Assembly: GCA_964035545.1 (NCBI GenBank)
Contig: OZ037770.1
Span: 6,334,729 to 6,398,728, forward strand
Direction: 5' to 3'
DNA from: Bugula neritina
Taxonomy: Eukaryota; Animalia; Bryozoa
DNA length: 64,000 nt
Shown here: positions 501 through 64,000 of the stretch, piece by piece
Layout of the letters: each line of letters begins with the position of its first letter
Numbering within the stretch: position 1 is the stretch's first letter
Translations under genes and position numbers: made by a program
The notes under the pieces: generated by a model
Told to the model about the DNA's origin: nothing
Seen by the model: the letters and a program-made list of their open reading frames with translations, nothing else
Databases searched by the model: none

Positions 501-541
501 CTCGTACTAGTAATAGTCCTCACACAAACCTAAAATCTCTA
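501..541. mobile_element. Possible terminal fragment of a non-autonomous DNA transposon (TAG terminus, Academ-like)
   Basis: Reverse complement TAGAGATTTTAGGTTTGTGTGAGGACTATTACTAGTACGAG resembles, from memory, termini of common marine-invertebrate elements; no partner end found. Confidence 0.25.
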
Positions 542-1074: not shown

Positions 1075-2720
1075 GGTATTTTACAGTGTCCTATTGAATT
1101 TTACAATATGTTTCAGTATGTTGGAATATATTATTGTTTTTGAAAATGTAATGCAGTATTATTACAGTGTATCACAGGTTATGACATTGTATTACAGTGT
1201 ATTACAACATAGTGTGATACATTTTAGTGGTGCAATCATTATTGGTATTAATCGAAAAGGCCCACTCTATACTGTTTATTATATTGTGAGTTCGACTACA
1301 TCGACCTGTAGCTATGGACAGCAGTGGCACCACTAGTAACCACCAATCAGGACAGGCACATTAATTGATAGCAGGTGGAGCTAGCTACTCGTAGTTGTAG
1401 TGCGCTGAGTAGCTAGCCGGCAGAGCAGCTTGGGACTTCATCTAGAGTAGTTGTGTATTAAAGCTCACTAATTATGTAATCGTTTCTATTCATGTTAACA
1501 GCAAATAACCTTTTTGTATTCGTGTAAATAGTAAACTATCTTAGTGTAAACAACCTGGTGTAGTGGTTTTGTTTAAGTTGACCCACACATAATATGGTGA
1601 ATTGCGAAATTCACTACAATATTACAGGGTATAACATAATAATACAGTCCATTACAGTCTTTTTCAGTAATTTACGGTTTGGTACAGTATGTTACAGTAT
1701 GTTTCAGTATATAATAATGTATTGCAGTATATTTCAGTGTATTACATTGCATTATGGTGTATTAAAACTTATTACAGTATCTTTCAAGATAAAACAATGC
1801 ATTACAGTATATTTCAGTTTATAATAATGCACTACAGTGTATTACAGTTTATCGCAGTATGTTTCAGTATGGTAAAATGTATTACAGTGTATATCAGTCC
1901 ATTACAATGTCTTACGGTTTATTAGATTTTTTTCGAAGCCTACTTTTGTTTATCACAATGTTTTACATTATATTTTAGTTTATTTCGATGTATTACAGGT
2001 TTTGAAAGTGTAATGCAGTGTTTTACAGTGTATCACAGGTGTTGACATTCTATAACAGTGTATGAATATCACAGCATATAAATTACACTACAGTCTCTTA
2101 CAGTGTTTGTTTCAGTATTTTATGACGTGCGACAGTATATTACAGTATGTTTGAGTATACTACAATGTTATATTATGATGTATTTCAGTGTAAAATACTG
2201 TATTACAGTGTATTACTATTTATCACAGTATGTTTCGGTATATTACATTGTATTACTGTGTATTACGGTTTATTACCATATATTTCAGTCTTACAGCTTT
2301 CGAAAGTGTAATGCCGTATTTTACAGTGTATCATAGTTTTCGAGGATGTATTTCAGTTTAATACGGCATATGACAGGTTACAACATTGTACAACAATCTA
2401 TAATATATAGTGCGTTTATTTACTTTACAGTGCCTTATAGTAAATTACAGCATGTTTCAGTATAGTACAATCTATTACAGTATATTTCAGTCTATTGCAA
2501 TGTATTATAATTTATGAAAGTGTACTGTAGTATATTGCAGTGTATCACAGATTCTGACAATGTATAACAGTTTACTACAACACATTACAGCATGTAACGC
2601 TGTACTATACAGTCTAATACAGTGTGCTTATGCACTAATTACACTGCGTTATAACAATTTGAAGTATGTTTCAGTATATTATTACAATGTATTACCGTAT
2701 ATTTCTGTCTATTACAGTGA
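1075..2720. repeat. Degenerate ~10-bp satellite (consensus ~GTATTACAGT), interrupted by a solo LTR; also at 1-88
   Basis: Many tattacagtg/tattacagta/gtttcagtat units; produces spurious Y/S/V/I/C-rich ORFs. Confidence 0.85.
1213..1618 (+). mobile_element. Solo LTR, Gypsy family 1
   Basis: TGTGATAC...TCACTACA termini; colinear with the reverse complement of LTR 11378-11795 (e.g. ttaattgatagcaggtggagctagctactcgtag); flanks ATAG/ATAT. Confidence 0.85.
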
Positions 2721-17100: not shown

Positions 17101-20100
17101 TGGTCGCCGCAACTAAACACGTCCTTGTACTCAGAGAGTAGCCGCGCCATTACCAGGCGTTCTCGCTTGCTCTCACAGCCATCACAGGCATCCTCGTACA
17201 ACCCCGCTAGGTGTTCAGGCACCGGCCCTCTGCCGTCTCTAGTGGGTACCTCACGGGCTTCGTCCGCTGTTTCCAGCGCGGGCCCGACATCCTCCTCCTG
17301 TACGGAGTGGAACTTCCCCACTAGAGACCCAGCCGGTAATTCTACCGGCTCCGTGAAAGGATTCACGCACTAGACCAGGAACTCCCCCCGCTCATCCAGT
17401 CTATTCAGACTGTTAGCGAGCTGGACGCCCCCCAGTGCACTTTCCACCACTCCTAGCTCGGAGATTTCCCTACAGTTCACTCTGAAGCGAACTGTAGCAC
17501 GGGAGCGCTCAAGTACAGTACAGCGCTGTACCACCTGCACTCCCCCCACCAAGGGTCGGCCAAATCGGTCGACACAGGCCAGCTCACGTCCGGCCATCAC
17601 CACCGCTGACTTGTTGAAGTCGATGTAGCACCTGTGTCGCTTCAGAAATGGCATGCCCAAGATGGCGTCCTCCTTGAGTTGACTGACGATGAAGGTCTCA
17701 CTGATCGTCTGATCACGGACTCTACCAGTCAACTGGATTACCCCATAGAAATGAATACACGACCCGTCCGCCAACGTGCCGTGTTACCCTTCATATGGTT
17801 CTAGGCTAGCCCTGTCCCTGGCACTGAAAGTGCCCAATAGATGCCGACTCATTAGGTTTGTGGTGCACCCAGTATCCAACAGGAATGTGGCAGCTTTGCC
17901 GGCCAGCTTGCCGGGGATGAAATAGCTGCTTCCATATGGCTGAGCACTCACTGAGCGGTTCGTCTCTTGAGGCGACACTTCATGTGCATGGAGTTGGGGA
18001 TGCACCTGTGCCTTTCGGTTGCAAGGGGGTCGTCGACGTCGCGTGGGCAAGCAGGTTACATCTCGGTTTTGCTCACACACGGGCGGCCGAGTGAATTCTC
18101 GGACTGGTGCTCGTGTGGGCAACCGAGGGAAATCTCTGTTTCGCTCCCACTCGTCGTACACTCCCTCATCAGGCAAACCTTGAAAGCGGTTTTTGAGTGC
18201 CCAAGCCGGAGGTTTTGGTGGGCCTTGCAGCCTACTCACTCTCCTTGGGGCTTGCCACTCTGGTGAAGGCGGCCTCCTCACCCGGTGGGGTTTGGGCCTT
18301 GACCTCTGCCTTGGGGGGTTAAACTGGGGCCCTCGGGGTCGCTCAGCTGTCGACTGCTGGCGTAGTTGCCTGATCTCAGCTAGCAACTATTGAATCAGGC
18401 TTGTGGTCAAGCTAATCGGCTCGTCGGCTGCTGCCGTGGCGACATGTACAGCTGTCTTTGTCGGCGACGTCAACACGTCGTCGTCTGCTCCGACTTGCTG
18501 TATTGTCGTACCAGGCCGGCATGCACTGTCGGCTTGGAAATAGGCATTCCCAAGCCTTAGAGCTCTCTCCATAGTCTCAACCTCGGCCACCAGCAGATGC
18601 TGTTTCAACCTGAGGTTGTTAATAGATTGGAGGAATGCATCCAGTGCTAAGCCCTGTCGACCATCAGCAGGCAAGTCGCCATAGGCGACTTGTGCCAGTC
18701 GTTCGACTACGGTAGCATGCTCTCGCAGGTTAGTCTTAGGATTTCTCCTAAGCCCCTGGAGTTGCAAGCGAGCATCTTGAGCGGTTAATCCAAACCGAGC
18801 TCGTAATGCTTCAATTATGTCACCGACGTTTTGGCTTATTCCATGGGGTTTAGCCGGCCCTGTCAGACATAACGGTAGCTGGATCAGAGTAACCCTGGTT
18901 GGCCATCTGCAGATGGCCGCCACATCACTAAACTCAGTGATGAATTGCTCAACATCTTATTCTCCTGAAAAGATGGGAGCCCGCAGATGGTACCTGTCCA
19001 TAGGCAGCGCTGGGCCGCCTATGTGATCCTCCTCTACTGCTGCTAGTTCCTGTCCGGGCGCGTCGTCCTCGTCAGCCATCTTCTTTTTACTCCCTGGCTA
19101 GGAGCATTTGTATTAAGTGGGATCCCACCGCTGCCACCACTGTAGTGAATTTCTCAATTCACTATATTATGTGGGTCGACTTAAATAAAGCTACTACACC
19201 AGGTTATTTACGTTATAACAAGTTTATTATTTACAAGATACAAGAATTGATTTACTACTAACATAAATTGTACGATAACATAATAATGAGCACTTTGCAC
19301 ACAACTACTCTAAGCAAAGTCCTAAGCTGCTCTCTCCGGCTAGCTACTTAGCGTGCTTCCAGTACGAGTAGCTAGCTCCACCTGCTATCAATTAACAGTC
19401 CTTCCTGATTGGCTGGTATTAGTGGTGCCACTGTCGACCAAAAGATGTAAGTCGGATGGAAGCCGATGTAGTCGATCTCCACAATAACATAACATAGAGT
19501 CGACCCTTTCGATATATAAACTAATTGTTAATTGCACTACTGAAATCCATTACAATATATATACTTAAAAATTGATCAGATGGCTTTTAAGAGAGAATAG
19601 CAATGAGCTTCTACAACCCTTTAGCCAAGTGAAAAATTGGTATTCAATTTTTGCAGTACTTTAGCCAATAAGAGCATTTGTTTTTCTGTAGAACAACCAA
19701 CTGGGATGGTTTGGCTTATACAGGATCAAGTATTACTTGTGTGTGACTATGAGAGTGTTTTGAGAGTAGTTAAGCTCGAAGATAATGATGTGTCCACTAT
19801 ATGCAAGGGTATGCAACTCCTAGATTCTACTATATCCTTATATGAACATTTAAAATTGAAGCTTTGTATATTCAGTAAACAGCTGAATTACAAGCAAATA
19901 TCTTTTGAAACTATATGACAGTTATGAATTCACAGTTTTTAAATATTGAAAAGAAATTAAAAAGCGCTAAAAAAGTTATCTGTCACTTTTTGCTTTCTTT
20001 AAATATTAAATAATCTATAAAATGGTAATCTTATAATCACCGACAATGTCATAAAAAGCTTTGAAACAGTCAAACGCTTACATCACTGTAATAAATAGAG

Positions 20101-26490: not shown

Positions 26491-27503
<1,013 letters not shown>

Positions 27504-28470
27504 GTATGGTGGTGGTGCGTCCCTGTTTTGTACACAAATAATAACTACTGCAACATAAAATTGCAAAGTTTTCAAGTTTGTAGAACAGAAAACTTTCCAG
27601 TCAAACTGCTTTAGACATAATTACGGTGCTAGTAAGTGTTGAATTTTGTAACAAATGCACACACGTCCACAGACACACCCACTCAAACACCAGCAAACGT
27701 GATCAAGTGATCAGTAATCAAGCAGTTGAAATTGTAATTAAATTAAATTAAATATTATACTGAATCATCATGGTACATGCAGGTGCCCTTCACCTAGCTA
27801 ATAGATGCCACCGGATGTCACACGGTAGTATCCTGTACTGCAAGTACATGTGTTATGTTTTCTATTTTTGGGTTGATGTGCAATCAAGAGAGTCTATTTA
27901 TTTGCTAAAGAACTTCACCAGGATAAATCGAGTTAATACAGTAGATTTTACACACAAGAATACAGCACAAAAACTATACAAATACATTTAGGTAATTTAC
28001 ACATCTATACAATCCAACACTCTATCTTCGACTACTAACAGCGGGAAACTCACTACTGCTACTAACTATCAGTGTCGCTAATTGGCTGTCCATTGTTCCG
28101 GGTCAATTACGTGACCCCGTGCTGTATCAGCGGGGTAAATAATATTTTCCCGTATTACGCTGCTGGTAGCTCCACGAGCCACCACACCGCCCCCACCAGC
28201 AGAAAGCCCTCTTTCTGATACAAAATATTTTACAGTTAGCACACATAACATCAGTAAACCAAAAGAAAAAGATATAAACACATATATAGATACAACAATG
28301 ACAGACATAATCAATATAACAGCATGTCACATACAAATGGCTAGCTGTAGAGAGAGAATACCGCTAGCTGTAGTGTTAGACAAGGAGGTTGAGCTGTCAA
28401 GCATTTACATGATAGTTTTGGACTTCCAAGAGAGTGGGGCTTACGGATCATTCAGGCAAAAGAACAAGAG

Positions 28471-29382
28471 TCAGTGTTTGACAAGCCGATGTTTGGCTTG
28501 ACGGGCACGTAGCTTTCTTTTAATCCGGCCGACAAAGCTTTTTAATTGTAGTACTGAGTAGATCCGGAGCCAACTGGGTGAACTCAGCCTGCAGCCGAAA
28601 GAGACGCTCCTGTACAGTGGCCAGGCGAACAGGATCTAGAGATGGGGTTCGTTTCTTACGAGGGGGGGATGCGACTTCTTCTTCCTCTTTTTCAGGGTAT
28701 GGAAACTCTTCGGGGGTATACACAATTTGAGGGCGTTCGGACACCAATGGAGATTGTTGTCTAGCATAGTCTAACACAGATTGGAAGCCGGAAGTTAGGA
28801 TGGCCAGTAACATTGCCTTATTTATTAAGTGCCGTATTAGCGTCAGTAATTCAGGGTAGAGCTTAGCATCTACCACACAGTTCTTCCCTGGAAAACATCC
28901 AGCTGCTCGATGTTTGGTGACAGGATAGGGGTAGGCGTCATCGTGTCCGCAGGGGCAAAATGTTAACAGGAAATGGGCGTTCACATGCAGCCTCAAGGAG
29001 CGGTGAGGCGAGCTCTCTTTGTAGCAAATCTGGCACTGTGTCCTTCCTTTGGGTCCCCAGGCCGCCTTTATCTGCTGCTCCGTCTCCGGCGACACCCACC
29101 GCCAGCGGCCGCGCAGTGGCTCGAGTCGTTCGCCATTGGCATACTCCTCGTGGTGCGAAGCGGGAGGTGCTCTATCCCGTACTCTGTGTACAATGGGTCG
29201 AGTGTAATCTGAAAGAGTTTCAACAGTGGTAGTACATTACACTGTAGTGTTGTCGGCTTGGACAGCCTGGCAACTTCTCGTTCAGTTAACACTCGTAGAG
29301 ATTTACGGTAGTGAGTAGTTGTAACAGAACACACATTGCAATGAGATTGTGAAATCTCTAAGTCAAACTGAGTTCCTACCAC
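28471..29382 (-). pseudogene. Extra ORF3 of Gypsy-2: C2H2 zinc finger, Cys/His cluster, NLS-like and coiled-coil-like segments (frameshifted)
   Basis: CQICYKESSPHRSLRLHVNAH; FCPCGH...KH...C; PRKKR; RLATVQERLFRLQAEFTQL; homolog of the C-terminus at 26490-26743 (+). Confidence 0.7.
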
Positions 29383-29528
29383 TGTAGTTCACTAACCTAT
29401 CTCTAGCTCAATTGACTCAGACGAGTTGGAGCTGAGTGATGCGATCTAGTTTCCATATCAAGACATAGTTCCCTCACCCCACGATCCGGTATCGTATGAC
29501 ATACTGAATATCTGTGAAATGGTTTGAA

Positions 29529-32500
29529 CTATTGACTAGGAACACGTCTGGTCTTGACTGCATCAGCATACAAAAAGATCGAGCAACGTGGTTGAGGTGC
29601 GTGACTAGGACTTTGCACACCCGGCGGATGAACTTTATTCTTAACTCCGCCGATACAAAAGTTGATATTTCCGTTGTGTTGACAAAACCCACAATTGCTC
29701 GATACCTTTCCGGTATGGCTCCCCGCTAGACTTTCATACGCGCCGCTTTTAATGCAGTCACATACGAAATTTTTTAAATATGCTGGAGGTTGCCTCGTAC
29801 GTTGTCTCCGCTCTAGGGGAAGTGGCGCACTCACCGGTGGACTAGCAGGGGCCTCTGATGGCGCTTCTAGTTCACCGGTAGTGGTTACTTCTTCCTGTTC
29901 TCTGAATGGAGCCACTCCCTTCGTGGGGGTTTGCACTTCCGGAACCGGCTCGGTTTTCGGAAGTGATGGAATCAGACTTGGCGTAGGAGGCGGCGGACGC
30001 ACTTCTGTAGGCAAAAGTGGTCGCTCGTCTTGTACCAAGTCTTTTTCCCACGAAATGACCAGTTCATACTCGGGTCCATGTCGCCCACACATTGTTGTCT
30101 GCCTCCTGGGCTCCAACAGCGGAGGGGGGGGGGAAGAGGGGGGGCTTTTCCCACTGCTTCCGGGCTAGCCCAATACAGCTTCAAGCGAGCCTCATTCTGG
30201 ATGGACATCTGTCTTGAGCGCTCGATCTTGTAGGTATGGTTGGGCATAGCCTCGACTATCACGTAGGGTCCCACGAACTTGGGCTGTAACTTAACCGCCT
30301 GTCCGCAACACCTACGGTAATTGACCATCCACACCCTGTCTTCTGGCTGATAGAGTGGTAGTTCCTCGAAATCCTCGCGCCGCACCTGCCACTACTTTTC
30401 TCACAGCATTTTGTGTGCGACCCTCATTCGTTCCACTAGTTCACTGGCATATTCGTGGACCGAGCTGTCTTGCTCTGGAACGTGGTAGGTAAGATGGTCA
30501 GGGACACGAGTCTCCCTCCCGAGTATTAGGAGGTTTGGGGTCTCACCAGTACGGGTGTGTGGGGTGCTACGGTATGCGCACATGACTTGCGACAACACCT
30601 TGTCCCATTCCTCCTGACTGCGTCCGAGGAGTAGACTCTGGAGCGCATCACCTAGCATCCGGTTATTGCGCTCCACCCCCATTACCTTGGGAATGGTAGT
30701 GGGTGGTCCTGCTCTGATTTACTCCCCAGAGGCGGCAGAGGTCGCTCATCAGTTGAGACTGGAACTGAGCGTCTTGATCAGAGTGTATCTGTTCAGGGAG
30801 CCATAAGTAACAAAATACATGTTGGTCTAGCGCCCTGGCCACTGTCGGGGCTGACGCATCTGGGATAGCCAGAGCGTCCGCCCGCCTCATAAAGTGGTCG
30901 GTCAATACTAAGATCCAACTATTGCCTTTGGGGGTTAGGGACATGGGTTTGACCAGGTCAACAGCTACTACTTGCCAGGGCCTGCCAGCATATAACCTCC
31001 ACCATCCCGCTTTACCAGGGAGACGGCCATGCTTGCTGGCCTGGCAGATTTCACACTGTTTTACTCTGAGTCGGACATCATGCCCCATTTTGGGCCAATA
31101 CCACCAGAGTTGTAATTCGGAGATCACTCGCTTAACTCCTGCGTGAGCCTGTTTATGAGTGTCCCAAATTAACTCACGACATATGGCACTAGGGCAGACC
31201 ACTCTCTTCCTCTTCGGGTGTCTGCCGTAAGCAGCTAGAGAAATGGTCAGCAGACCATCTTGCCGATCCTCAGCGAGTCCCAACGCTGGCAGAATAGCCG
31301 GAACTCGGCGCATCCCTGCCATATTCGTTCCTCGCTGGGTTTTCGCCCTTCTTTTTTGGCCCAATATATGTCTGCCACTACCCCAGGCAGCTCTTCCTGG
31401 AGCTTCTTCAGCTCCCGGACATTATCGGCCAAAACAGGGTTGGCGCGGAGGTTTTGTACAACCTCCGGGGACTTTTCAACTTTCGGTGTGAGTTGACCCT
31501 GGTCCCAGTCAAACTGTGTTCCGTGGTGAGCCAGCGTCTCTAATTCACATCGCGGGGGACCTCCGTCCCTCCTCTTGATGTTGAGACACTGTTTGCAACC
31601 TCCATCAGGTCGGCGGCTCAACCCATCCGCATTGCTGTGTCATCTACCCGGTCGATGTTCGATCCGGTAGGAGAACTCAGCTACGATCTCGAGCCAGCGG
31701 GCGATTTGACTAGAAAGTTCCGCTCTCTTGCACAACCAGATTAGGGAGGCATGATCTGTACGCAGCCGGAAATTCCTGCCGTATAGGTATGGTCTGAAGT
31801 GCTTCACTGACTTAATTACTGCCAGCAACTCCTTGCGGGTAGTGCAGTAATTTCGTTCAATGGGTAAGAGAGACTTGCTGTAGTAGGCTACTACTACTTC
31901 TCAGGTTTCCTGCACTTGAGACAGCACAGTGCCAACATTCTGGTCACTAGCGTCAGTGTCGAGGATGTACTCCAGAGTAGGATCTGGATAGGCCAAGACG
32001 AGTGGTGTCAGTAGGCAACCTTTGAGGCGGTCAAACGCTCCTTGTTTGACCGGGATCCACTGCCATGTCACTCCCAATGCGGTGAGCTGGTTTAACGGCT
32101 GTGCTATCCCTGCAAAGTCTGGTATGTATTGTCTGTAATACCCTACCAGACTCCAGAAAGCCTGGAGTCCGGTCAAGTCTTGGGGGGGGGTGACCCAGTC
32201 TTCTATTGCCCGTACCTTCTCGGGATCCGTTGCCACGCCGTTTCGACCGACAACGTGCCTTAAGTACTTGACCTCCGGCTGCAATAGAGCGCACTTGGAA
32301 GGTTTGAGCTTCAGACCGGCACCTCGGAGTCCCTGAAAAACCTCCCGCAGATGACTGACATGTGTCTCAAAGTCTGGGGAGATCACGATGACATCATCAA
32401 GGTAGATCAGCAGTGTCTTCCAGTGGAGTCTGCTGAGGACTTGCTCCATCAGCCTCTGAAAGGTGGCCGGGGCGGAGGTTGACCCGAAGGGCAGCAACTT

Positions 32501-34070
32501 CCACTTCCGCAGTCCGTCCCTTGTGATAAACATCCCCTTCTCCTGGGCGTTGGGACTCAGCGGAACTTGCCAGTAACCGCTCAACAAGTCTAACGTACTG
32601 AAGTACTTGCTGCCAGCTAGGGCGTCTAGTAATTCGTCAATGCGAAGTAGAGGGTAGGCGTCCTGTATGGTCACGCTATTGAGCTTGCGACAGTCCACAC
32701 AGAACCGCCAACTGTCGTCTTTTTTCCGGACCAGTACGACCGGCGAGTTCCACCGCAATGTGGGCTGGCTTGATGAGGCCGTGGTCCAGAAGATCCCAGA
32801 TTTGTCGGCTAACCTCCTTCTCCTTCTCCGGCCCCAGCCTGCGTGCGGGTTGCCGAATAGGGACTGTTCCTGCAGTCAGCGGTATATTGTGTCTGACAGC
32901 TCCAGTCAGTCCCTCGTCGTGATCTCCGCCGCTAAACACATTACCGTAGTCGCGTAGCAACTTCGCTATAGCCTGGCGTTCCTTGTTGCTTGCGCAGCCA
33001 CCACAGGCTGTCTCATATAACTCCCGGATGTGTGCTGGGACAGCCCCTCGCCCTTTTGTAGGGCGTCGAGGGGGTGCCTCCGTCGCATCTCCCAGCGACA
33101 GGCCCACGTCTTCCTCCTGGACAGAGTGGAACCGGCCTAGCATAGACCCAGCCGCTAACTTGATGGAGTCAGTGAAGGGGTTGACACACTGCATTAACAT
33201 CTCTCCTCGCTCAGTCAGTTGGTTTAAACTGCTGGCGAGTTGGATTCTTTCGTGCGCACCTTCAACTACCCCGAGTTCAGAGATCCGGCTATTGTTCACT
33301 CTGCAGTGAATGGTAGCTCAGAAGCGGCCTGATACGGTACAGTTTCGTACCATCTGCACGCCTCCCACTCAGGGGCGGCCAAACTTGTCGACACAAGCGA
33401 GTGCTCGCCTGGACATCACCATTGCAGATTTGCTAAAATCGATGTGACATCGGTGCCGTTTCAGGAATGGCATCCTGAAGATGGCGTTCTCTTTGAGCTG
33501 ACTGACGATAAACGTCTCTTGGATCGCTTGATCACGGACGCGTCCAGTCAGCTCAATTATACCGTAAAAGGGAAGGCACGACCCGTCAGCTAGGGTGCCA
33601 TACCCCCCCTCGTACAGTTTCATCTCGCATCTGACCTTAGCGCTGAGGATGTCGAAAAGTTGGCAACTTATGAGGTTCATGGTACAGCCTGAATCAAGTA
33701 GGAAGGTGACAGCTTTGCCCTCTATTTTGCTGGGCAATAAATAGCTGTTCCCATGAGGCTGTACCTGTACTCTCTCTTCGTGCCTCACTCTCGCAGGGAG
33801 TACCTCCCTCGCTTTAGGTCGTGAAGGAGGTAGCTTGGGACGGTGGTAGAGTGGCCTCGGAGGTGGGGAGGCTAAGTTTCCAGTTGCCTGCGCCGGCTCC
33901 CTCTCGGATTTTTGGTCTAGAAGGCCGTCGAATCGGTTGTGGAGTGGCATGTAGAAGGTAACAGCGGGGCGGAGCCCTTTGCCTGTCCGCCGTGGCTGTC
34001 GCCACTCTTGGTTGTCAGCCTGTGGTACCCGTCTGAGTGACCTCTGTTTCCTCTTCTCTGAGGGGTTCAT
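29529..34070 (-). pseudogene. Gypsy-2 pol (protease, RT, RNase H, integrase), with many frameshifts and stops
   Basis: FLLDSGC, SPVVLVRKKD, DLLSGYWQV, YLDD, ILDTDAS, VAVDL, IHSDQ, KFVGPY. Confidence 0.94.
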
Positions 34071-34108
34071 CGCTGACTCGCAGGAAGCGGGAACATCTGC
34101 GGACCGCG

Positions 34109-34865
34109 CACAGGATAGTTAAGGGCAACCTTTTAGCTGCAACTGCCTTGCTGAGATTTGCATTGTAATCATATAAGAATTCAGTACCAGTAAAATAAAA
34201 TCTCACCTAATTGTGCTAGAGTCAAAATTTAAAAACTATGTTGTAGATCTTCTTTTTCCCCAGAGTAAGTTTTTTGGAAATTTTAGTTTTCATTTTTTTT
34301 TGCAAAGTTATAGACAAAAAACTGCCCAATTTTGGCCAATTTTGCCAGAAAAACTGACTTTTCAGTACCAGTAAAATATCTCAGCAGCAAAACATAATAT
34401 CTGAATAAAAATTGCACTGCTGGAATCCTAAGATATTTCTCCAGTGCAACTTTTTTTCTTTTTCCAATAGCTCTGCTAGATTGCTCATAAATTGGTGATT
34501 TATACACTGAAAATGCCATATTTTTTCATAAGAAACTAGCAGCGCGCAGCACTTCACGCTTCAATGAGCACGTAGGGATGAGAAGATATTGGCGCGTACA
34601 TACTAATTACAGGCTTGCTAGCTGGCAGGCCATAATGAATAGCCCGCTTTTTACTTTGTTTATGTAGCACCCATAATGGAATGTTGATAGATAACGCAGC
34701 CCTAATGAAGGTTGCGGCTTATTGGTTGTAGTTTATTCTTAGGCTAAACAATTGCAAGTAGGCAACACGCATGCCACCCGCAGAACAATATTATTCAAGA
34801 ACCTGAACTACATTTTGAGAGAAATTTATGATATTCTTGCTGAGGATGCCCTTAACTATCCTGTG
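34109..34865. mobile_element. Non-autonomous CAC-terminal DNA transposon (CACTA/CMC-like), copy 1
   Basis: 19-bp perfect TIR CACAGGATAGTTAAGGGCA; 2-bp TSD CG/CG; internal direct repeat ttcagtaccagtaaaata. Confidence 0.92.
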
Positions 34866-36496
34866 CGGTAGTTTAACTCCGGAGTTAGGAGGGGGCAATA
34901 TCTGCGGAAATGTCCTTGATTTCCACACTCCCAGCAAAAACTGACCGTTTTCCCCGGTGGCGGCGCCGGTGGCCGTGAAGGCTCAGAGGCTATACCTACT
35001 GAGGTTTGGTGTGTCAGTGTTGCTATCAGTATAGCCAACATTTCAGTCAGTTGGGCGACTTTCGATGCGGCAGTTAACTGCGCTACGGCAGCCGTCGCAG
35101 AGGGCTCCGCCTCCCGCTCCGCTGCCGTGTCCGTGTGGTCTATCTCCACTTGGCGGGAGCTCCCCCGATTTTTATGCATCTGGAATGCCAAGAGATAAGC
35201 TTCTTCTTCCACCAGAGCATCTTCGACTGTGGTAACTCCTCTAGCTAGAAATTGGTGGTGGAGTCCCAAGTCGTTGATAGACTGTATAAAGGCGTCAAGA
35301 GTATACCTCTCATGGTTGACTTGGGGCAGATCGCTATACGCAATCTGTGCCAGCTTCATGACCGTGGCGGCATGTTCTTGTAGGGGGTGTGAGGGTCACA
35401 CCGCAGCCTTTGTAGATGGAGATGCCGAAGCGGGCCCGCACACAGGATAGTTAAGGGCAACCTTTTAGCTGCAACTGCCTTGCTGAGGTTTGCATTGTAA
35501 TCATATAAGAATTCAGTACCAGTAAAATAAAATTTCACCCAATTGTGCTAGAGTCAAAATTTAAAAAACTATGTTGTAGATCTTTTTTTCCCCAGTGCAA
35601 CTTCTTTGGAAATTTCAATTTTCGTTTTTTTGCAAAGTTATAGACAAAAAACTGCCCAATTTTGCCTGAAAAGCTGACTTTTCAGTACCAGTAAAATATC
35701 TCAGCAGCAAAAGCATGATATCTGATAAAAAGTTGCACTGCTGGAATCCTGAGATATTTCTCTAGTGCAAATTTTTTCTTTTTCCAATAACTCTGCTAAA
35801 TTGCTCATAAATTGGTAATTTATACACTGAAAATGCCACATTTTTTCATAGGAAACTAGCAGCGCGCAGCACTTCACGCTTCAATGAGCACGTAGATATG
35901 AGAAGATATTGGCGCCTACATAGTAATTACAAGCTTGCTAGCTGGGAGGCTATAATGAATAGCTCGCTATGTACTTTGTTTATGTAGCACCCATAATGGA
36001 ATGTTGATAGATAACGCAGCCCTAATGAAGGTTGCTGCTTATTGGTTTTAGTTTGATCTTAGACTAAACAATTGCAAGTAGGCAACACGCATGCCACCCG
36101 CAGAGCAATATTATTTAAGAACCTGAACTACATTTTGAGAGAAATTTATGATATTCTTAGTGAGGATGCCCTTAACTATCCTGTGCAGAGAAGAAAAGAT
36201 GCTATCGATGTCTGCGCCAACCCATAGGGCTTAGCTTTGTCCATCAATGACATTCTGAGCTTCAGCAGGGCCACCCTAGGGGTCCACTGGGCGACGTCCA
36301 TTACGTCGCTAAACTCTTGGATAAATTGCTCTACCTCTTCTTCGCCTGTGAATGTGGGCGCCTTTAACCGGTAGCGGTCCTTATTCAGCTCTCGAAGAAC
36401 CCTTCGCTTTTCTACCACATGATTCACAGGAATAACATCGTCTCTACGCTCACCTTCTACTGCCGGTAGTTGCATTCCAGTGTTTCCAGTCTCCAT
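34866..36496 (-). pseudogene. Gypsy-2 gag, split by DNA element copy 2
   Basis: KAPTFTGEEEVEQFIQEF...; removing the insert restores IFSSLRARFGIS; zinc knuckle CWECGNQGHFRRYC. Confidence 0.88.
35441..36185. mobile_element. Non-autonomous CAC-terminal DNA transposon, copy 2
   Basis: Same TIRs, highly similar to copy 1, same orientation; 2-bp TSD CA/CA. Confidence 0.92.
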
Positions 36497-36510
36497 CTTG
36501 GATTTGCACT

Positions 36511-52079: not shown

Positions 52080-53513
<1,434 letters not shown>

Positions 53514-55957
53514 CTACAATATACGCATCAGCCAAAGTGCAATTACATGTGTAATTAACAAAAAGACCTAAACTTATTTATTTCTTAATCAATTTCGTGA
53601 TAATTATGTGAATTAAAAAATTTCAGTTAAAATAATATTTTGCTAAAACTATGCTTTGATCTAATATATTTTACATTTGCTGCTAGTTTTGTTTTGCTTT
53701 ACTATTGCCTATAGCAATCAGTTTTTACATTCTGCAAAACAAGCAATCCTAATAATCCTTGGTTCTGCTTTACTGATGACAAGCCTTATTTATATATTTG
53801 AATTGCTCAAAATTTTGCTAGATAAACTTATTTTTGGTAAAAATACAACTTAAACAAATTAAACAGGCTTGCTTACCTGTTACTAGCAATGATTGTGTAC
53901 AGGTAGAATATATGTTGCACTGTCTTCATGATTTAAACACAAAGATATAAATACTGTTGAGTAGAATTGTTGTACTATCTAATTCACTGCTTTTATTAAC
54001 GCTTATAGTTAAAATTGTAAATTGCAGATATAGAAAATTTTTGAAATTTTTCAAGGATCAACAAACAACCATAAATTAAAACTTTGATTGTTGAAGCAAT
54101 CTTCAGCTATATTTTTTCTCATTTTTCAATATACACACTTTCAACATCTCTGCATATATGGTATAATCGATTTACAAGTAAAAGTTGCTTTCTACTAGTA
54201 GAGATGTAGTTATATCCCACTATGGAGAGTACAGGCAACAACAATCTGAAGTTTGGTTGCTACATACTGTAAAATTTTAACTATGCTATAGGACTGTTAT
54301 TTTATTCAATAGTTATTATTCTTGAAATATTATTATTATAACTCACTTATAATGTCTTCACCACATTTGTTACAACGGGTCAAACAGTTTTTGATGAAAT
54401 AATGTTAATTATGATGTCATTAAACTTGATGTCAACTTATGCATTCAAGTCCCACGCAATTCCATGAGGACCTTTGCTACATATGCGCTATAATAAAGTC
54501 TGTTTAAGCCTACACAGGATAGTTAAGGGCATCCTCCACATAAATATGATGAATTTGTAGTCTCAGTTCTTAATTATTATTTCTCTGTGGGTGGTGTGCG
54601 TGTTGCCTACTAATCATAATATAGCATGAGGTTTAGCCGTGACCAATAAACAGCCACATCTACTAGAGCTGCACCTCTTCGAATTATTATTATTTGTGCA
54701 GTCAATGTTGAGTTTGCTCAGTGTCTGTGGTTAATTATCATCAATTTATCATAGGCTGCATGTATTACAACATGGCATTCTCTTCTCATCAAGTTACAGC
54801 TCAATAATAAGCCTACTATTTGGTGATTGAAATTATATCAATTTAAATTATTATGTTTTACCCAGTTGGATTACAAAAGCCCTCAATACTTTTTTAATCT
54901 TGTTACCTTTTGGGAAATTTTTTCAGAATGGCTATGTAACAAATAATCTAAATTGTACTCCCTTTTAAACTAAGGTTGAGATTATTGACTATTAGCTTTC
55001 TATCCATAGATGCCATTGGCATGACTGTAACACTTTCTGTGAGAGAAGGCAGTTCTAGTTCTACATCTTTTTAATCAAAGCAGCAAATAGTGATGATATG
55101 ACTCATCAAACACAGTGGCCCTGCTTAGTAAGGTAGCATTGTGAAAAATACCAATATGAGAAACATAGTATGGTTATGAGTTTACGGCTAATTTCTATCC
55201 CAAACATACATATACAATGCATATTTTAGATTCAAGTTTTATTTTGCTATCTATACTACAGATTATTCAAAGCTGTTTAGTGTAAGGCAGTGTACTATAT
55301 TATATTTTAAAGAGTCTTTCTATTGAACGGGGATGCAAGGATGTTTTATGGCCTTGTGACTACATCACTTCATAATCAATTATCTGTTTTAACATTTAAC
55401 TAGTGTAGTGAAAATAATAAATAACATACTGGAGCCACTTGAACCTTGTAAGAAGCTGACTTCAGTGATGGTAGTTTACTTGTTAATTGGTAATTTAACT
55501 AGGTTGGTGCGTCTACGCACTATAATAGAGGGAATTTAGGAATTTAAGTCATGGGTGCTTAGGTTAAAATATCAAAAATTTTAATTGATATAAAAATAAA
55601 AAATGCAAAACTTAAACTAATGCTAATCAACAATGCTTATATATAAACTTTCCATTATAAAACTTGTTGCCCAAATTTGGAATTAAACCACAGACATTTG
55701 GTTTTTAAGCTGATGAGCTATGACAGTCACATCAAAACTTCTAAATTCTGCCTTAACCCATTGTGGTCATACAATTAGCTAGGGTGCTGTTTTCGATAGC
55801 TACAATTAATATTTGCTACAGCCAGACCCACACAACCTGTTGTTTTTGTGGTTGCATTACGTAGGAGCAGTTGCTGCTTGGAATTACTAAAATACAAAAA
55901 TTGCGCCTTTTCTGACTCAGTGCAGGGTTATTCAGTTCAGTTACAAACAAGATAGCC

Positions 55958-58900
55958 ATGGGGAAAGATTACAATGAGAATCAGTGTGGATTTTTAGCAA
56001 CAATTTACTTTATACACCTTAAATCAGGTGCTGAAGTAGAGCATTTCAACAGAGAGTTTAAAGTCACAAAAGGATTAACTGCCAAGGATTATAGTAGAAA
56101 AAGAAAGCAAGCTAGTAGGCATTTCAATAACGCCCTATCCTACGTTAATAATAATAAGGAGAAAGAAAAAGATAATTTTGTTTCCTATTTCTCATTTCAA
56201 AACTTCAAGAAGCTGTCAGCAGCAAGTAAACTAAAGCACAACTACAATAATTGCCTAAAACCTGAAAACGCTGAAAACCATAGACCAATGTGGATAATGA
56301 AAAGAAGCAACAAATGCCATCTAGAGACTCCTGCTAAAACTGCTTTGAATTCTTTAAAAGCTGTATTGGACAAGACACCGACTGAGATAACTGCTACTGT
56401 GGTGGATGATTTTGTTAGAAATGTAATAAAACCAGTCACAGAAAAATTAAAAGGAACACCCTTCTCAGCAAAGTTATCTATTGGCTCAAAGCGTAAAGCA
56501 GTGACAGTTGACGCAGTCCCTAAGAAGGTTCGCAGAGCCATCATCAAGTCTGCCAATGATGAAATGAATGATGAAACCACTAATAAAGATTTCATATCGC
56601 TCTATGCATCTAAGCAATCACAATCAGAGTGGGATGTGCAAAGAAAACGATCATTTGGTGAAATGAGGCAAAACAGAAAGAAATCACACACCGGCAGACT
56701 AACTGATTATACATTCAATGAAATAGTTGTAAAATCAGCTTTAAAAGAAAATGAGGACATAAATTGGTCTGCTCTAAGCAAGTCAGCAAACTTGAAAAAT
56801 GCCAACAATAAAGCTCCCAGAAACGCAGGCCAGGTAAGACTTAATCAAATTGTAACTACTGCTGCTAATTACTTTTTTGACAGAGTTACCATTTTTTATT
56901 TTAAATATGTTATCTATGCAGAAAAAGTTTGACAAGATTATCACCATTACTTTATTTCATCTTTGATGGATCTTCCAAAAACATAAATTGCACACACACA
57001 TAATATATACTGACATATATACACACACATAATATATACTTACATATATACATACATACACACATAATATATATGTCATAGAAGTTGAGCAAAAGTAATA
57101 TTTGCAAATGTAGTACATCTATCATCTATGAAACAGGAGTGTATTGACTTGTTTACCAGGTTATGAAAGAAGTCGCAGAACATGTTTTGAAGCATCCTGT
57201 ACAAAGAAAGCCAAAAACCCGAATATCATGGCTAAATTACAAAAATCTCAGTCTAAATATCAAACGAAAAGCTTCTGTAACTAGGCTAAAAATAAAGAAA
57301 AAGCGGATGATAGACAACGGAGAGATTGATGTTGGGAAAGCCATAGTACCAATAGAATACCAGACTGTACAAGTTCAATCAAATGGCACATTGGTAGGTT
57401 GATTACTCCTAAAGTCAATAACTGAGCTTTTCAGCACACTTGTACTATGTTACAGTAAGTATAAAGGACTGATAATATCATTTCTTACTTTATCTAGTTA
57501 TTATTTAAAGTATTTGGTATATCATTCTTTAATTTTGCAGGTCAAATCTAAAAAAGAGGTATCTGGTAGAAAGTTCTCTCTTCTAAACATACGGAGAGAT
57601 CATCTCGCCAGAATGGAAAAGCTGAAGATTTTAAGATCTGCAGCTGACATAGAAAAGATGTCTGTAGTAGATTCACTAGCTTTCCTGGAGAGAAATGGTA
57701 GGATTTGAATTAAGTATATCCAGAGGCTCATTTGTCTTTAAAACTTGTTCTACAAATAAATGATACTGATTTTCTTAACATAATGAACAACATTCTATGA
57801 CTTTTGAGATTTATGAGCTACATAAATCAAAACTAGCGCTGCAATAGCTATAGAAAACTTTATTTGAACAAAAAAAGATATTTACAGCTAAAATGCTTGC
57901 AATGTGGAGCAAGGCTTATCTCAATATATCCATGCCTTGTGGAAATCAAAGAAGCCACAAAATTTCTGTCATCTTTTTAGAGATAAGCTTTTTTAGACTA
58001 AGACCAAGTAAATATAGTCAATATTCCAAAGGCCCATTGCTCCGAAGGTGCATTATTCCGAAGGTGCATTAGTCTGAAAATTGGTAGATATAGTATTAAA
58101 TCACTGAGAATATCATAAATTTTACTCACAATCTTGCTATATTATTGCTAGCTGTGGGTGGCGTGCGTGTGGCCTACAAGTTTGTAATTTTTTAGCCTGA
58201 GATTACACTATGATGCTGCCTCAATTAAGGGCTCCATCATCTATCAACATTCCATTGTGGCTGCTCCATAAACTAAGTACACACAGCAAGCTATTCACTA
58301 GCCTGTCAGCTAGCAAGCCTGCAATTAGTAATCTATGCATTAGTTTCTCTTCATCTCCAAGTGTTCACTGAAGTATGAAGTGTTGTGCAAGGGTGATATA
58401 ATAAGTATTTTTATTTCACAGTTCATGTAAAAATGACAGCTATAGGCAATGAACTCAAAATATCCAGTTCAATGGCTATAGCGACTGCAATTCTATTCTA
58501 GCTACAGTCAGTCAGCTTATATAGGCCCTTCACACGTTGACTATTAACTGAAAAACTAAATTAAAAAATATTAAAGGAAGCAAACATTTTGGGTCTACTG
58601 TACTGCATTTATGATAAGCTTAGAAAAAGTTTACCTTGTATTTTATAAAAAATAGTTTGCATTTGAAGTTGGCGTCAAAAAATTATTGGTATTGAATGAA
58701 ATAGTAAATTTCTGGCTTGGCAGTTAATTATTTAATATCACATATTTAATCTCTAAAATTATTTGTAAGCTGCTAAACTGCATTATTCTATGCTAGTATT
58801 CTTAATATCAGTAAATACGAGCATTGGAGACAAAAAATAATAAACATCTTACTCTGAAATTAAATAACCAAAGCTGCACACCAAACCAAACAACCCCACA

Positions 58901-61900
58901 AGACATGTAGATGAGGGCAACATTATTAGTATATAAGAGTTCAGGCCCGCCAAATAAAACCTCACCTAACCTAAAATTTGAAAACCATGTTGCAGATCTT
59001 CCTGTTGCTCAGACTATGTTCAATAAATAATTTTAGTTCTAATAATAGTTCTACTAATTTTCGGACTAATGCACCTTCGGAATATTGCCCAGTCCCCCCT
59101 AAAACTACCATAAAAAATCAGTCTGGAATGCGCAATCACATTGAATGCAATTCTTTAAAATAATTACTATTAAATGTTTAGGGATAGTGGTTGGCAGTAT
59201 GGACAGCCCCAAGGAACGCCTTAAAGAAGCCTCGCAAAGTAGACATATGGTTTTGTGGCATGACCATTCAGAAATTGCTGGTAAACATTTATTTATTCAT
59301 GTATTTTTGTACAAAGAAATGTTAGTTACATAATCAAGCTGTTCACCAATATATCTTATATGTATTTTTTTCAGGTAAAAGCCACTACTTGTTCATGGTA
59401 TGGTTTTTGTACGACCCATGTACATACTATACAGATGGAGAGTTTTCAAAGATGAACTGCAAAGTAAGCTGATAGAATTATGCAAGCTCAATATAGAACA
59501 CATTTCAATTAGGGTCATCTTATTTGAATTAAAGTTGCTACAATAAGCCAAGCTCTCACTACAGTATTACAAGTGTCGTTTAGTCTTTGGTAACAGCAAT
59601 TACTAATGACTAGGTGTTTTAAAGAACAAATGTTGAAATACACCAAAATATTCTGAAACATAAATGTTTACTTTATGCTAATTCAGGAAACACCAGTCAA
59701 TGTACAATCAGTGGTGGAATCACCTTACATCTATCTACTTGCCCAATCCAACTCTTCCGTTAAGGATCAACTTCTTTATGTTCCTACTCGACTAGAAGAC
59801 CTTAGAGAATTGGAGGAAAAAATTAGCTCAAAAGATGGACGAACATTTACTGACAAACTAAGATTTTTTTCTGGTGATAGTCCAGCAAGGCAACTAGAAG
59901 CTGGGCAGCAATGTGGAGGTAAGAGTGATAAACTATAAATTGTTTACACAGGATGAAATACAAGATAGCTTTTGCTACAATAATAACAATACGTGTTTGA
60001 CTTATTCCATGTATAAATTCCCCAAAAAGAATACATATTTACAAGAAACTATATTATTTATGATGAAACTTGATAAAAACATGCATATGTATGTTCAGGA
60101 ATGTTCCCATGTATGTGTGGCACCCAAGACATTTACTTCAGTAACACTAGCAAATATAGCCAAGAAGGAGCTTTCTATAGTTCACAAGACCGCCTTCAGC
60201 TGCTCCATAAGACAAAAACATGGGAAGATGGTTTTACTAAAGGGAACCTAGCAGTCTTTCAGACAATGAAGGTATGAAATTAAGCTGAGTTATAAATAAA
60301 CACTGGTTGGGAGAAACGGCACTTCCATGTAATACATTTATATATGAGCAGCAATAATTACACTTTTTCAGACTGAAGGGCTCAGGAATGAATTGTTTCA
60401 CAGAGGGGTTGCCTATTCAAGTGCAGAGAACATTTCAGGGCTAAGAAGAATTTTGAATGTTAGCCTAAAAGGTCAGAAAATTTAGAATGATAAGTTTAAA
60501 CTATATGTGGTTACAGCGTTGTCGGATGAGATACATAGAAAAAATATGGGCTGCATGAAGCCATAGTAACATAGAATAAATCTTCATCCAATCTTAGTTT
60601 TGCATCTAGTGAAAGTAGCGATTCATTGTTATGTATATACACACACAAGCTACTATGGGCGCACACATGTATATATAATCTTTATGAAAAACTTAGTTAG
60701 GAATATAACTTTGGTCTCACATAAGTTTCTAAATACCTACTTTACAGGTGTGAAAAGGCCTCCTGCTCTTCTTTGTACTAAGCTGGAATCACAGATCGAT
60801 ATAGGCAGCTACGAAATTTCATCAATAGAACCATTACATGATCTAAAAAATGTTATCAACAAAATTTTAAAAGAACTACCTAAAGCTGCAAAGAATAAAG
60901 AACTCAAGGAAAAATTGACCAATCTTGTTTCAGACATTGAAGGTGAGTAGAGATTCTAACTTGCTAGTAGAAATTGCTAACACACATTTTCAATATTGTC
61001 TATATCAAAATTAAATAGCCATTTCAAAAACAATTATAAACCTATACAAACATGAATTATAGCTCAAAATAGAGAAATGAAGGGAACAGAATGCCGGCTT
61101 AATTTGGTAAAAGTCACCATCATGCTACAAGATTTCCAGCACACTGAAGATGGGAGAGCCATGTACGTTATGCTAGCAGCATTGACAGAGCTGCAAAGTT
61201 TGGCATACATGTGTGACACTAATAGATGTCCTAGAACAATCCTCAGGGCATATAATCAAAGTTTTCTTTTTGCCATTAAGTGCATGGAACTATTTGAAAA
61301 CCCAGAAACTTGCACCAAGCGCGCTATGTTTGGGATGCCCTTCCATTGCCTTTCAGTGCACTTGCCTGAAACATTGAGACTTGTTTCAGGCAGATCATTA
61401 GTAGCCGAACACGCTGAAAGGCACTTTTATAAACTAAGGTGCGTACTAAAAAATAATACTAGTACAACAGGAATTTATGCAAAGTTTGTCCACTCACTTG
61501 AAAATGAATGCAAATAGCTTACTATAGGGGTGCTGTAGAAAGAACTCAGATCTATTTAAATTCAGCCCTGATAATATTACTGTGATCTATGAAAACAGTA
61601 TTGTTTTAGGGAACTAACGCTGAGGTGCTCCAATAGAAAATCGCAAAGTATTATAGCAAGTGCTATGTTTAGAATAGTGGTAGAAAGAAAGGCTGCTGAT
61701 GATGCCATTACCAGCTACGGCAGACAGGAGCACACTATCTCCAATGCATGTAGTGGCCTTAGCCTAGGACATAACACCATATTCTCAAACAAGTAGGTCA
61801 CTGTCTGATAAGTAAGAATAGTAGCTACTTTGTTGTGTATGATATTGCTACTAAACACAGGCAAATATGCTACTTAAAAGTCTATCACTATTTTTACACT

Positions 61901-62518
61901 AGTTTCCTCAAAGCTCATAGGACAGCAACACTTCACCATTTCCGACGAATTGCTGACTTTCTAGAAATTGGAGAAGGAGTTTGGTTCAAGGTACATGATG
62001 GGGGAGTAGAGTTCAAGGATGGAAAAAACTGCCCAGACAACTACAATTCAGGGCCAATATTAACTCATTTCAGGTAAATATCTTAACTACCTATATACCA
62101 CTATATATCATATATTGTATATATCATACAACAAAAGTAGACTGTTTCTTCCTAAAAATTAATCAAAGAAAATAAAATTAATTAAAGAAAATAAGCTTCC
62201 ACTTGAAGAAAATTAAATGGAAATTCTTTACAACTTGAATCTAAATTGCATGTCCTAGCTTGAAAAAAATTGCATACAAAATTTGAACAGCTACTATCTA
62301 ATTTTTATTAATTCTAAGCAGTACGTTTTATTTAACATGTTTGGTAACCACCAGAAAACTTTTTGTTAGATCGAGAAACATGAAAGACATTAACAACATG
62401 CTGAAGACAAGCTGGGAGTTTTGCATCAGAAATAAAAACTCATTAAAAATTCCACTTTTGTGTGACATGCTGACAGATAAGAAGACAGCTGATAAGCAAG
62501 GTAAAATATTCTTTTGAA

Positions 62519-62579
<61 letters not shown>

Positions 62580-63520
62580 GTTATTTATATGTTAATTACA
62601 AGCAATTTGAAAAATGAGCAATAATTTTCTTCTGCCTAAAATGTCTATTGATAAAATTTTAACAGTGTCAAGAAAATATGAAGAAATCAAGCCTGCTATA
62701 AGCAATGTGTTGAGTAGTTTGGCAAAGGACAAGCATAAAGAAGTAGAGAACTCTATTGCTGTTTCTGCATCCAATACCTTGAATGAAACAGATGAGAAGC
62801 TTGATGAATCTTCATATGTGTGTGCTGTACCATTGTTGACACAATGTAAGTAATTTTAGATGCTGCCTCCCAATTTTAAAATTACTTATCAATTTGAAAT
62901 ACATCAAATACACTAAGAAAAAATTATTTTAAATTGGCAGGCCAGACAGAGGTACCAAGCATTTTGCCTAAGAAACTTCAACAAAAGAACACAGTTACTG
63001 GTACGTTGCTTTAAGTATGGTTATCATACACATATAACATACTTATTTTCAGTAACATAAGTTATAGTCATTTAGATTTAGAAAATAGAACCATGCAGCT
63101 ACTATAATGACTTCAGGGCAGCCAATGCACTCACATGTAATCTGAAATAATTAGAATCACCCTGGTGTTTTACAGCATATATTTCTGCCCACCTTACTTG
63201 CAATCAGTTGCTTTTCAATTTTAGATCCTATGAGGAGTCTATGGCCTTACAGTAAAACGATTTTAGAAAGCTTTCTTTCAGCTAAACACCGGTTCAAACA
63301 ACATAACTCTTGCGTTAATAAATTAATGTTGAAATCTGCAAGCCATAAAGTAAAGCCATATTTCTTGAAATTTGTTAAAATATTAGAGGAAGAAGAAAAA
63401 GCAAAAACCATAAGCAAGTTCAGAGATAGAGGACTGATTTCTATGGAAAGTAACTCAGAAGACAATTGGAAGATTAAAATTATTAATTATTGGTTGAATC
63501 AAATTAATGAGTTTCTATAA
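55958..63520 (+). CDS. 16-exon DDE transposase (~1183 aa) with RAG1/Transib/CMC-like core motifs and a SAP-like insert
   Basis: Exons 55958-56833, 57160-57393, 57541-57697, 59182-59280, 59375-59463, 59687-59918, 60099-60271, 60372-60471, 60748-60942, 61063-61438, 61610-61792, 61903-62073, 62370-62500, 62666-62845, 62941-63000, 63225-63520 sum to 3552 nt, all GT-AG, no internal stop. Motifs VLWHDHS, RFFSGDSPARQLEAGQQCGGMFPCMC, EPLHDLKN, PFHCLSVHLPE, LVAEHAERHFYKLR. Confidence 0.82.
58040..59088. mobile_element. TIR element in transposase intron 3, containing a decayed piece (58101-58390) of the CAC-terminal family
   Basis: tattccgaaggtgcattagtctgaaaattggtaga (~58054) is inverted at ~59050-59084; tandem tccgaaggtgcatta subrepeats; 58101-58390 colinear with the revcomp of ~35860-36163. 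Confidence 0.7.
62519..62579. repeat. Compound (TA)n(CA)n(TA)n microsatellite in a transposase intron
   Basis: Directly visible. Confidence 0.95.
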
Positions 63521-64000
63521 TAAAATTATTTGCATCCTTTTTTTCTATTTTTTTTTCTAACTTTAAGAAAAATAAACCTAAAGGTGAAACCAAATCAATA
63601 TCAAAAGATGAAACTATTTTTTCTGAAGTGTAATTCAACATCACTAAACATGTTTGTTCTAGTTCAACATCATTATGATTAATATTATGACATGAGTCTT
63701 ACAGTTAGTGTTATTGATACTCATACTGATACTCAGTCTCATGTCGATACTCATAGCTGATGACTTTTATTAGATACGTCATTGCCAGTAACAAAATGAA
63801 TACAAATATATAAAAAATTTAATGAATAATAATTATAATAATAATATACATTATATTAAATTAAAATAATACTAATAGTAAATAATAAAAAATTATTATT
63901 AAAAATTACTAATATATTACTATTAGTATTAGCCGTAATACTAATAACTATAAGATCATCACTATGAATATTATGTGAGTATTTGCTGAAAAATTTACTT

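Follow-up and report, generated by a model that had tools for sequence, protein, structure and literature searches.

A probably competent CMCT transposon with a predicted sixteen-exon transposase in the bryozoan Bugula neritina

Plant CACTA elements carry subterminal repeat arrays and a second, TnpA-like gene, and Chapaev and Chapaev3 elements have CAC termini and target site duplications (TSDs) of 3-4 bp. To our knowledge, the only solved structures within the CMCT clade of transposons are those of RAG1, ProtoRAG and HzTransib, all with 5-bp staggers. This clade encompasses CACTA/EnSpm, Mirage, Chapaev, Transib and their kin, and is defined by a RAG1-like RNase H DDE domain, a C(2)C motif after the second aspartate, an H(3-4)H motif between the second aspartate and the glutamate, TSDs of 2-5 bp and, in most families, CA..TG termini (PMC12730594). 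Transib elements are labile in the length of their TSDs (bioRxiv 10.64898/2026.08.26.747230), and TransibSU is more than 30% identical to RAG1 (PMC4411706). Here we analyze a long element in a 64,000-nucleotide stretch of the Bugula neritina genome, referred to as the window (contig OZ037770.1, here C6, positions 6334729-6398728; the assembly, GCA_964035545.1, comprises 216 Mb in 321 contigs at ~33% GC). An earlier note, made from the letters of this stretch, had proposed a complete autonomous element with non-autonomous partners, from a poorly characterized lineage of the CMC/Transib/RAG radiation. Both parts of this proposal are supported. The element has both terminal inverted repeats (TIRs), an intact frame and short cognates; its family displays a DDE triad, an H-x4-H motif, 2-bp TSDs and CA..TG termini. 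It is very likely a complete autonomous cut-and-paste CMCT transposon from a deep marine-invertebrate lineage that is unnamed in the sources reached.

Element structure, copies and short partners

The long element has a total length of 10,978 bp and TIRs of 23 bp each, matched at 22/23 positions. Its right TIR, which the earlier note had expected downstream, ends at C6:6400218, 1,490 bp outside the window, and is directly followed by TA; the same dinucleotide stands before 54513 and gives the element a 2-bp TSD. The terminal 18-mer CACAGGATAGTTAAGGGC occurs five times in the window (at 34109, 34848-34865, 35441, 36168-36185 and 54513), against 0.08 expected. Genome-wide there are 501 exact terminal 18-mers, mostly paired ~756 bp apart (0 for the reversed control), and the TIR pairs number ~250.

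Five full long copies were compared: that of the window, a second on C6, and one each on contigs C1, C2 and C4. The TSDs of the four further copies (C1, C2, C4 and the second on C6) are AT, AA, TA and AG. The frame and all splice sites are intact in 5/5, with differences confined to in-frame 6-bp indels. Four of the copies are only 0-0.6% apart, and those on C1 and C4 are identical over 11,027 bp although their flanks and TSDs differ. The long element has thus moved very recently, which bears out the suggestion that it might still be competent. The fifth copy is 4.7% divergent, with a synonymous divergence (dS) of 0.076 and a nonsynonymous divergence (dN) of 0.019, or 0.091 and 0.012 within the core. 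With dN/dS values against this 95% copy of 0.26 overall and 0.13 in the core, the transposase is under purifying selection. The TIR list and a profile search revealed a sixth copy, 12.8 kb long, on C3, and two older copies (74-77%) are broken by stops. The profile search also returned more distant families of the same lineage at C6:7089914-7092439, C4:15507604-15510089, C5:6918961-6919736 and C3:12191212-12194058.

Purifying selection, together with 15 introns of which most appear old, would also be expected of a domesticated or decaying transposase gene that gained its introns through long host residence. This explanation is very improbable, as at least five copies of the element, each with both TIRs, are dispersed and have different TSDs, four of them scarcely diverged, and dead older copies are also present. 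The element is real and complete, and probably still competent.

Both short elements in the window are reversed. The earlier note had placed a 24-bp identity to the left terminus of the long element at 34109 and 35441; the identity is real, but lies at the far ends, 34865 and 36185, whereas 34109 and 35441 match the long element's right end. Distinct short insertions are 93-96% alike. Because they are 87-90% similar to the right 478 bp of the long element but only 76-77% to its left 110 bp (90% and 76% for the two in the window), they would descend from an older relative. As judged from these alignments, the short elements are older cognates that did not arise by deletion from the present long copy, which they would partner through shared ends.

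The 2-bp TSD claimed earlier holds in 16/16 insertions (11/11 distinct short insertions and 5/5 long copies), and duplications of 5 bp were found in none, nor any of 3 bp among the short insertions. TA-specific targeting was rejected, since TA accounts for only 5/16; the others are AA, TT, AC, AT, AG, CG and CA. A preference for palindromic targets, prompted by the window's own site, was likewise rejected (25 paired positions vs 30 +/- 5.5 by chance). Short elements form a cluster at C1:14.6-15.6 Mb (L029-L046), where two copies have identical flanks and several flanks resemble the 10-bp tandem repeat at window positions 1-2700.

The repeat inside intron 3 has many free copies elsewhere in the genome, 80-91% alike, and is found in every young intact long copy but not in one dead older copy. 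Although it looks unrelated to the short elements, ~290 bp of it is similar (71%) to their inner left part, and ~110 bp resembles, inverted, their right subterminal part. Just beyond the window (L051, ~1250-1830), the element holds a stretch like a solo long terminal repeat with TATA-like and AATAAA motifs, most of which (513 bp) is missing in the 95% copy. The convergent second gene envisaged in the earlier note was not seen, nor any RAG2-like gene, in the 1,970 bp after the stop codon, where the longest stop-free stretch on the minus strand is 73 codons, although a gene built of tiny exons would escape this search. No second long (TnpA-like) open reading frame (ORF) was seen in the element. 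Regarding subterminal repeat arrays, no 12-mer is repeated in the left 1,445 bp and none occurs more than twice on the right side. An Rfam search gave no match.

The predicted transposase gene

Sixteen exons with canonical AG/GT boundaries join into 3,552 nt encoding 1,183 amino acids plus a stop codon, with zero internal stops, as the earlier note had read from 15 GT-AG introns. The start codon (55958) lies 1,445 bp inward of the left terminus (54513). The catalytic codons and motifs also fall at the places claimed for them: D450 (59262), D549 (59876), EPLHD (residues 681-685 of the spliced frame), PFHCLSVH (811-818) and E837 (61416). Further motif residues are C567-x-C569, H684 and H813-x4-H818. 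The acidic residues are spaced D-99-D-288-E, and those of mouse RAG1 D-108-D-254-E. The frame and dN/dS were computed on the spliced model, and database searches were run exon by exon.

The exon structure is shared with relatives. The metagenome relative L065, whose exons are 26-66% identical to those of the window, has 9 donor and ~7 acceptor sites in the same codon and phase, and L062 agrees to a similar degree; both are without intron 11, and one further site differs. Most intron positions and phases are common to the window's gene and relatives at ~50% identity, and intronless relatives of 1,033-1,283 amino acids are collinear with exons 1-13. Most of the 15 introns appear to be old.

Table 1. 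Features of the long element and its short partners, in window coordinates
Feature	Position	Strand	Remarks
Short element, 757 bp	34109..34865	-	Same TIRs; TSD CG
Short element, 745 bp	35441..36185	-	Same TIRs; TSD CA
Left TSD copy, TA	54511..54512		TA also after right TIR
Left TIR, 23 bp	54513..54535	+	22/23 match to right TIR
Exon 1, aa 1-292	55958..56833	+	Helical N-terminal region, family-conserved; H-x4-C-x2-C in relatives; no fold match
Exon 2, aa 293-370	57160..57393	+	Both junctions conserved in L065
Exon 3, aa 371-422	57541..57697	+	GRKxxLxxIR block ahead of RNase H fold
Repeat inside intron 3, ~1.08 kb	58015..59099		Inverted CCGAAGG-array ends
Exon 4	59182..59280	+	First catalytic Asp, D450, codon 59262
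Exon 5	59375..59463	+	
Exon 6	59687..59918	+	Second catalytic Asp, D549, codon 59876
Exon 7	60099..60271	+	C567-x-C569, putative ZnC2 equivalent
Exon 8	60372..60471	+	Putative degenerate counterpart of family SAP insert, by position alone; no Pfam match itself
Exon 9	60748..60942	+	EPLHD; H684 at RAG1 H795 position
Exon 10	61063..61438	+	H813-x4-H818, putative ZnH2 equivalent; catalytic E837, codon 61416
Exon 11	61610..61792	+	Following intron absent in L062, L065
Exon 12	61903..62073	+	Family-specific conserved C-terminal block
Exon 13	62370..62500	+	
Exon 14	62666..62845	+	Variable tail
Exon 15	62941..63000	+	
Exon 16 with stop codon	63225..63520	+	Supported by copies in this genome only
First part of 1,970-bp 3' non-coding region	63521..64000	+	Element continues 1,490 bp beyond window to right TIR and TA

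Relatives, fold and terminal signature

A search with exon 10 returned 420 representatives at E 0.001. The named relatives are uncharacterised proteins of Argopecten, Mytilus, Saccostrea, Crassostrea/Magallana, Pinctada, Branchiostoma, Ptychodera, Nematostella and Actinostola, so that the hosts are bivalves, cnidarians, amphioxus and one hemichordate. The nearest relatives (50-73%) are mostly exon-sized ORFs from sequencing-run and metagenome assemblies; they group with the window's exon in a supported branch (98/93), and the element appears to belong to an intron-rich sub-lineage. Among 38 relatives, the residues D, D, H, H, H, E and E are invariant in all covering rows, and the H-x4-H histidines (H813, H818) in 38/38. 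The cysteine pair is C-x-C in the window and most relatives and C-x2-C, at the same place, in several.

The sole real Pfam match over these relatives is SAP, between the cysteine pair and the EPLH motif, a position at which exon 8 of the window is degenerate. The Pfam models for RAG1, Transposase_21, DUF4218 and Plavaka found no match in the 38 relatives (E 0.1 for Transposase_21 and DUF4218), and neither Transposase_21 nor DUF4218 matched the window's single exons at E 0.1. No Pfam family besides SAP came up with single exons either. DUF1280 and DUF1258, the latter of which we take to be a Mirage-linked domain, were also without a match among the 38. Searches of PDB sequences, with exon 10 as well as with three profiles, returned SAP only and no RAG1. 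Genome scans with PF02992, PF12940, PF13960 and PF06918 were blank, but their controls were silent too and they are not used as evidence. The exon 1 alignment contains a single H-x4-C-x2-C motif without Pfam or fold match; folded with 33 relatives, this region (predicted local distance difference test, pLDDT, 72; predicted template modelling score, pTM, 0.35) gave no match above background and no NBD, RING or Chapa domain.

The fold was compared through the core of the Argopecten homolog P0031 (residues 455-1010), which is 31-48% identical to the window's exons 4-6 and 9-12 and was modelled with a pLDDT of 91 and a pTM of 0.92. Foldseek placed RAG1 first (E 1e-8, template modelling (TM) score ~0.5), then ProtoRAG and HzTransib, the only CMCT members among the PDB structure matches. 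Exhaustive alignment to RAG1 gave Z 15.4 at a root-mean-square deviation of 4.4 over 373 residues with 14% identity, followed by BbRAG1L (Z 13.6), the P element (11.1) and HzTransib (10.7). The RAG1-type fold and motif order proposed in the earlier note are thereby supported. The aligned ranges, 12-450 of the model and 585-1001 of mouse RAG1, would put the first aspartate near RAG1 602 and the last glutamate near 963, adjoining D600 and E962, as estimated from the range ends rather than a residue table. The special closeness to RAG1 and Transib that the note had suggested was overstated, with structure-based identities of 13-14% to RAG1 and 9-11% to HzTransib. Scores equal to or above that of RAG1 come from the predicted models of plant CACTA (TM 0.59-0.60) and Plavaka (0.56) and from that of an unnamed cnidarian cluster (0.61), and language-model features tie RAG1 and Transposase_21 at 0.90. 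Because the CACTA and Plavaka models and the feature scores equal those of RAG1, the family would be about equally distant from both wings of the clade.

These comparisons bear on whether the element is instead a divergent Transib/ProtoRAG-type transposon near the RAG1 ancestor whose TSD length has changed. RAG1 is indeed its best solved-structure match and ties as best named cluster by language-model features, but PDB rank says little where the clade is represented only by RAG1, ProtoRAG and HzTransib. Motif order and spacing are RAG1-like, yet identity is 9-14%, well below that of TransibSU to RAG1, and there was no RAG1 match in Pfam or, with three profiles, among PDB sequences. Since TSD length is labile within Transib and is insufficient alone, exclusion from Transib rests on the TSD together with the very low sequence identity. 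The RAG2-like gene was not found in the region searched, exon 1 has no NBD or Chapa match, and all other families have T as their second terminal base. We consider this origin unlikely; the element appears to be neither Transib nor ProtoRAG, though by analogy Transib/RAG1-like in its working.

Termini in other hosts were sought by junction comparison and an inverted-repeat search. Five related families with both ends found begin CTCAGGTACATTAAGG (12.2 kb; 2-bp TSD in 5/5), CTCAGGGCAGTTAAGG (9.4 kb; one 2-bp TSD, one 4-bp, one none), CTCAGGGCAATTAAGG (4.95 kb; TSD TA), CTCAGGTGCATTAAGG (6.6 kb; TSD TA) and, in Nematostella, CTCAGGTAGATTAAGG (6,319 bp with intact TIRs, TSD CA; GCA_932526225.1, OW051992.1, L083 6014-12332). 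The terminus of the window's family is CACAGGATAGTTAAGG. All six share C[A/T]CAG-N5-TTAAGG, and a 2-bp TSD accompanies most insertions; together these would constitute the signature of the lineage. One copy in Branchiostoma is marked by a short inverted pair of CTCAGTACCAAA with no TSD, and termini were not found around the copies of P0031, P0221 and L084. The CACAGGA start does match the recombination signal sequence heptamer at 5/7 positions, as the earlier note had observed, but this does not appear to be a trait of the lineage: CA..TG and CAC..GTG termini occur in the window's family, whereas the five others all have T as second base and begin CTCAG. The heptamer argument is weakened because the CAC start is not common to the related families. 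A related 12.2-kb family (ENA ERZ26692694, L070-L075) carries a protein-kinase-like passenger ORF at 15905-16519 in 6/6 copies shown.

We tentatively propose, as a reading that may well prove right but that falls somewhat short of being probable, that these families form an undescribed, superfamily-level RAG1-fold lineage of molluscs, cnidarians, amphioxus and hemichordates, as distinct as Transib/RAG1, Chapaev and CACTA are from one another. It would be defined by the C[A/T]CAG-N5-TTAAGG terminus, the 2-bp TSD and the SAP insert, with the window's intron-rich copy as a working member. Repbase could already list the lineage under a different name, for example that of the Nematostella families EnSpm-1_NV/EnSpm-2_NV or that of Lanisha, whose members include one from a coral. 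The much-studied Nematostella genome contains the 6,319-bp relative, whose TIRs are intact and whose TSD is 2 bp; CACTA models rank with the best structural matches; and EnSpm-1/2_NV sit on a very long branch of Kojima's CMCT tree, which also includes Lanisha-2_StPi. The 38 relatives, however, lack Transposase_21 and DUF4218 matches, and the CTCAG termini of the related families are unlike the CAC..GTG or CA..TG of EnSpm and most CMCT families (PMC12730594). No fungal or plant name is among the named relatives, whereas Lanisha includes Rhizophagus and moss elements, and the literature searched yielded no description of it. An existing Repbase entry is a possibility that we hold to be rather doubtful.

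Several points weigh against the main reading, that of a complete autonomous CMCT transposon from a deep marine-invertebrate lineage. The fold comparison was made with the homolog P0031 in place of the window's joined protein, and co-location of the three acidic residues is implied by aligned ranges only. Splicing into 16 exons and expression are predicted from sequence alone, and support for exons 15-16 is limited to copies in this genome. The 2-bp TSD is present in just 1/3 copies of the CTCAGGGCAGTTAAGG family. Placement apart from the named CMCT families draws on descriptions, motifs and structures in place of a common tree.

Mechanism, setting and comparison with known systems

The one spliced gene would produce a single-chain transposase of 1,183 amino acids, with an RNase H fold bearing D450, D549 and E837, a zinc-binding insertion formed as in RAG1 (C567/C569 with H813/H818) and a SAP-like DNA-binding insert. 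Additional DNA binding probably comes from the SAP insert and the N-terminal region. By analogy with RAG1 and HzTransib, a transposase dimer would bind both 23-bp TIRs, nick at the terminal C, open the flank via a hairpin and join both 3' ends to the target with a 2-nt stagger. The same enzyme may by analogy move the ~750-bp elements in trans, and copy number would increase by gap repair or replication after excision.

Directly left of the element, at ~52100-53530 on the minus strand, exon-like stretches resemble fibronectin type III repeats, and the long element may sit in or next to a receptor gene. GC-rich stretches at 14000-19500 and 28000-36500 hold related minus-strand ORFs (78% repeat 16375/32194) and are probably decayed retroelements; both short elements are inserted in the latter. 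A long degenerate inverted repeat with arms 77-100% complementary lies at 26513-28687.

How the RAG1 fold sets its stagger and reads its ends would become testable with this apparently active single-chain relative, given its strict 2-bp stagger and its 750-bp donor. The family may serve as an outgroup for judging which RAG1 features are ancestral, but says nothing direct about how V(D)J recombination arose. Many marine-invertebrate repeats and 'uncharacterized proteins' that still lack a name could be classified by the terminal signature. The transposase would also be one that stays mobile while its gene holds 15 introns, mostly old, one of which carries a 1-kb passenger repeat.

Set against known systems, the family shares features with each. 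Like Chapaev and Chapaev3, it is an animal CMCT element with CAC termini and a long N-terminal region, but its TSD is 2 bp, with no Chapa or RING finger detected and no DUF1280 match. Lanisha and EnSpm-1_NV/EnSpm-2_NV (Repbase) are deep CMCT branches with cnidarian members, compared here by description only. CACTA/EnSpm, Mirage, Plavaka and ESTA share the CMCT motifs, the 2-bp TSD occurs among them, and predicted models reach TM 0.55-0.60. The family differs from this group in its C[A/T]CAG-N5-TTAAGG terminus and in having no Transposase_21, DUF4218 or Plavaka Pfam match, from plant CACTA in that no second gene or subterminal arrays were found in the window's element, and from ESTA in that its TSD is not TA-specific; the 2-bp TSD of Mirage is shared. 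HzTransib is also a single-chain transposase of the same fold with short TIRs, and Transib shares the CACA start of the window's family, but its Z of 10.7 is no better than that of the P-element transposase (11.1), identity is 9-11%, and the window's transposase is more than twice as long with a TSD of 2 bp. RAG1 and ProtoRAG are the best solved-structure match (Z 13.6-15.4), yet at 10-14% identity. The window's family departs from them in a 2-bp rather than 5-bp TSD, in showing no RAG2-like partner and no NBD, RING or Chapa match, and in its SAP insert, its own C-terminal block and lineage termini that are mostly CTCAG. With the RAG1 core and ProtoRAG (BbRAG1L) it would share the RNase H D..D..E triad, the zinc insertion with a cysteine pair and H-x4-H, and the histidine equivalent to H795.

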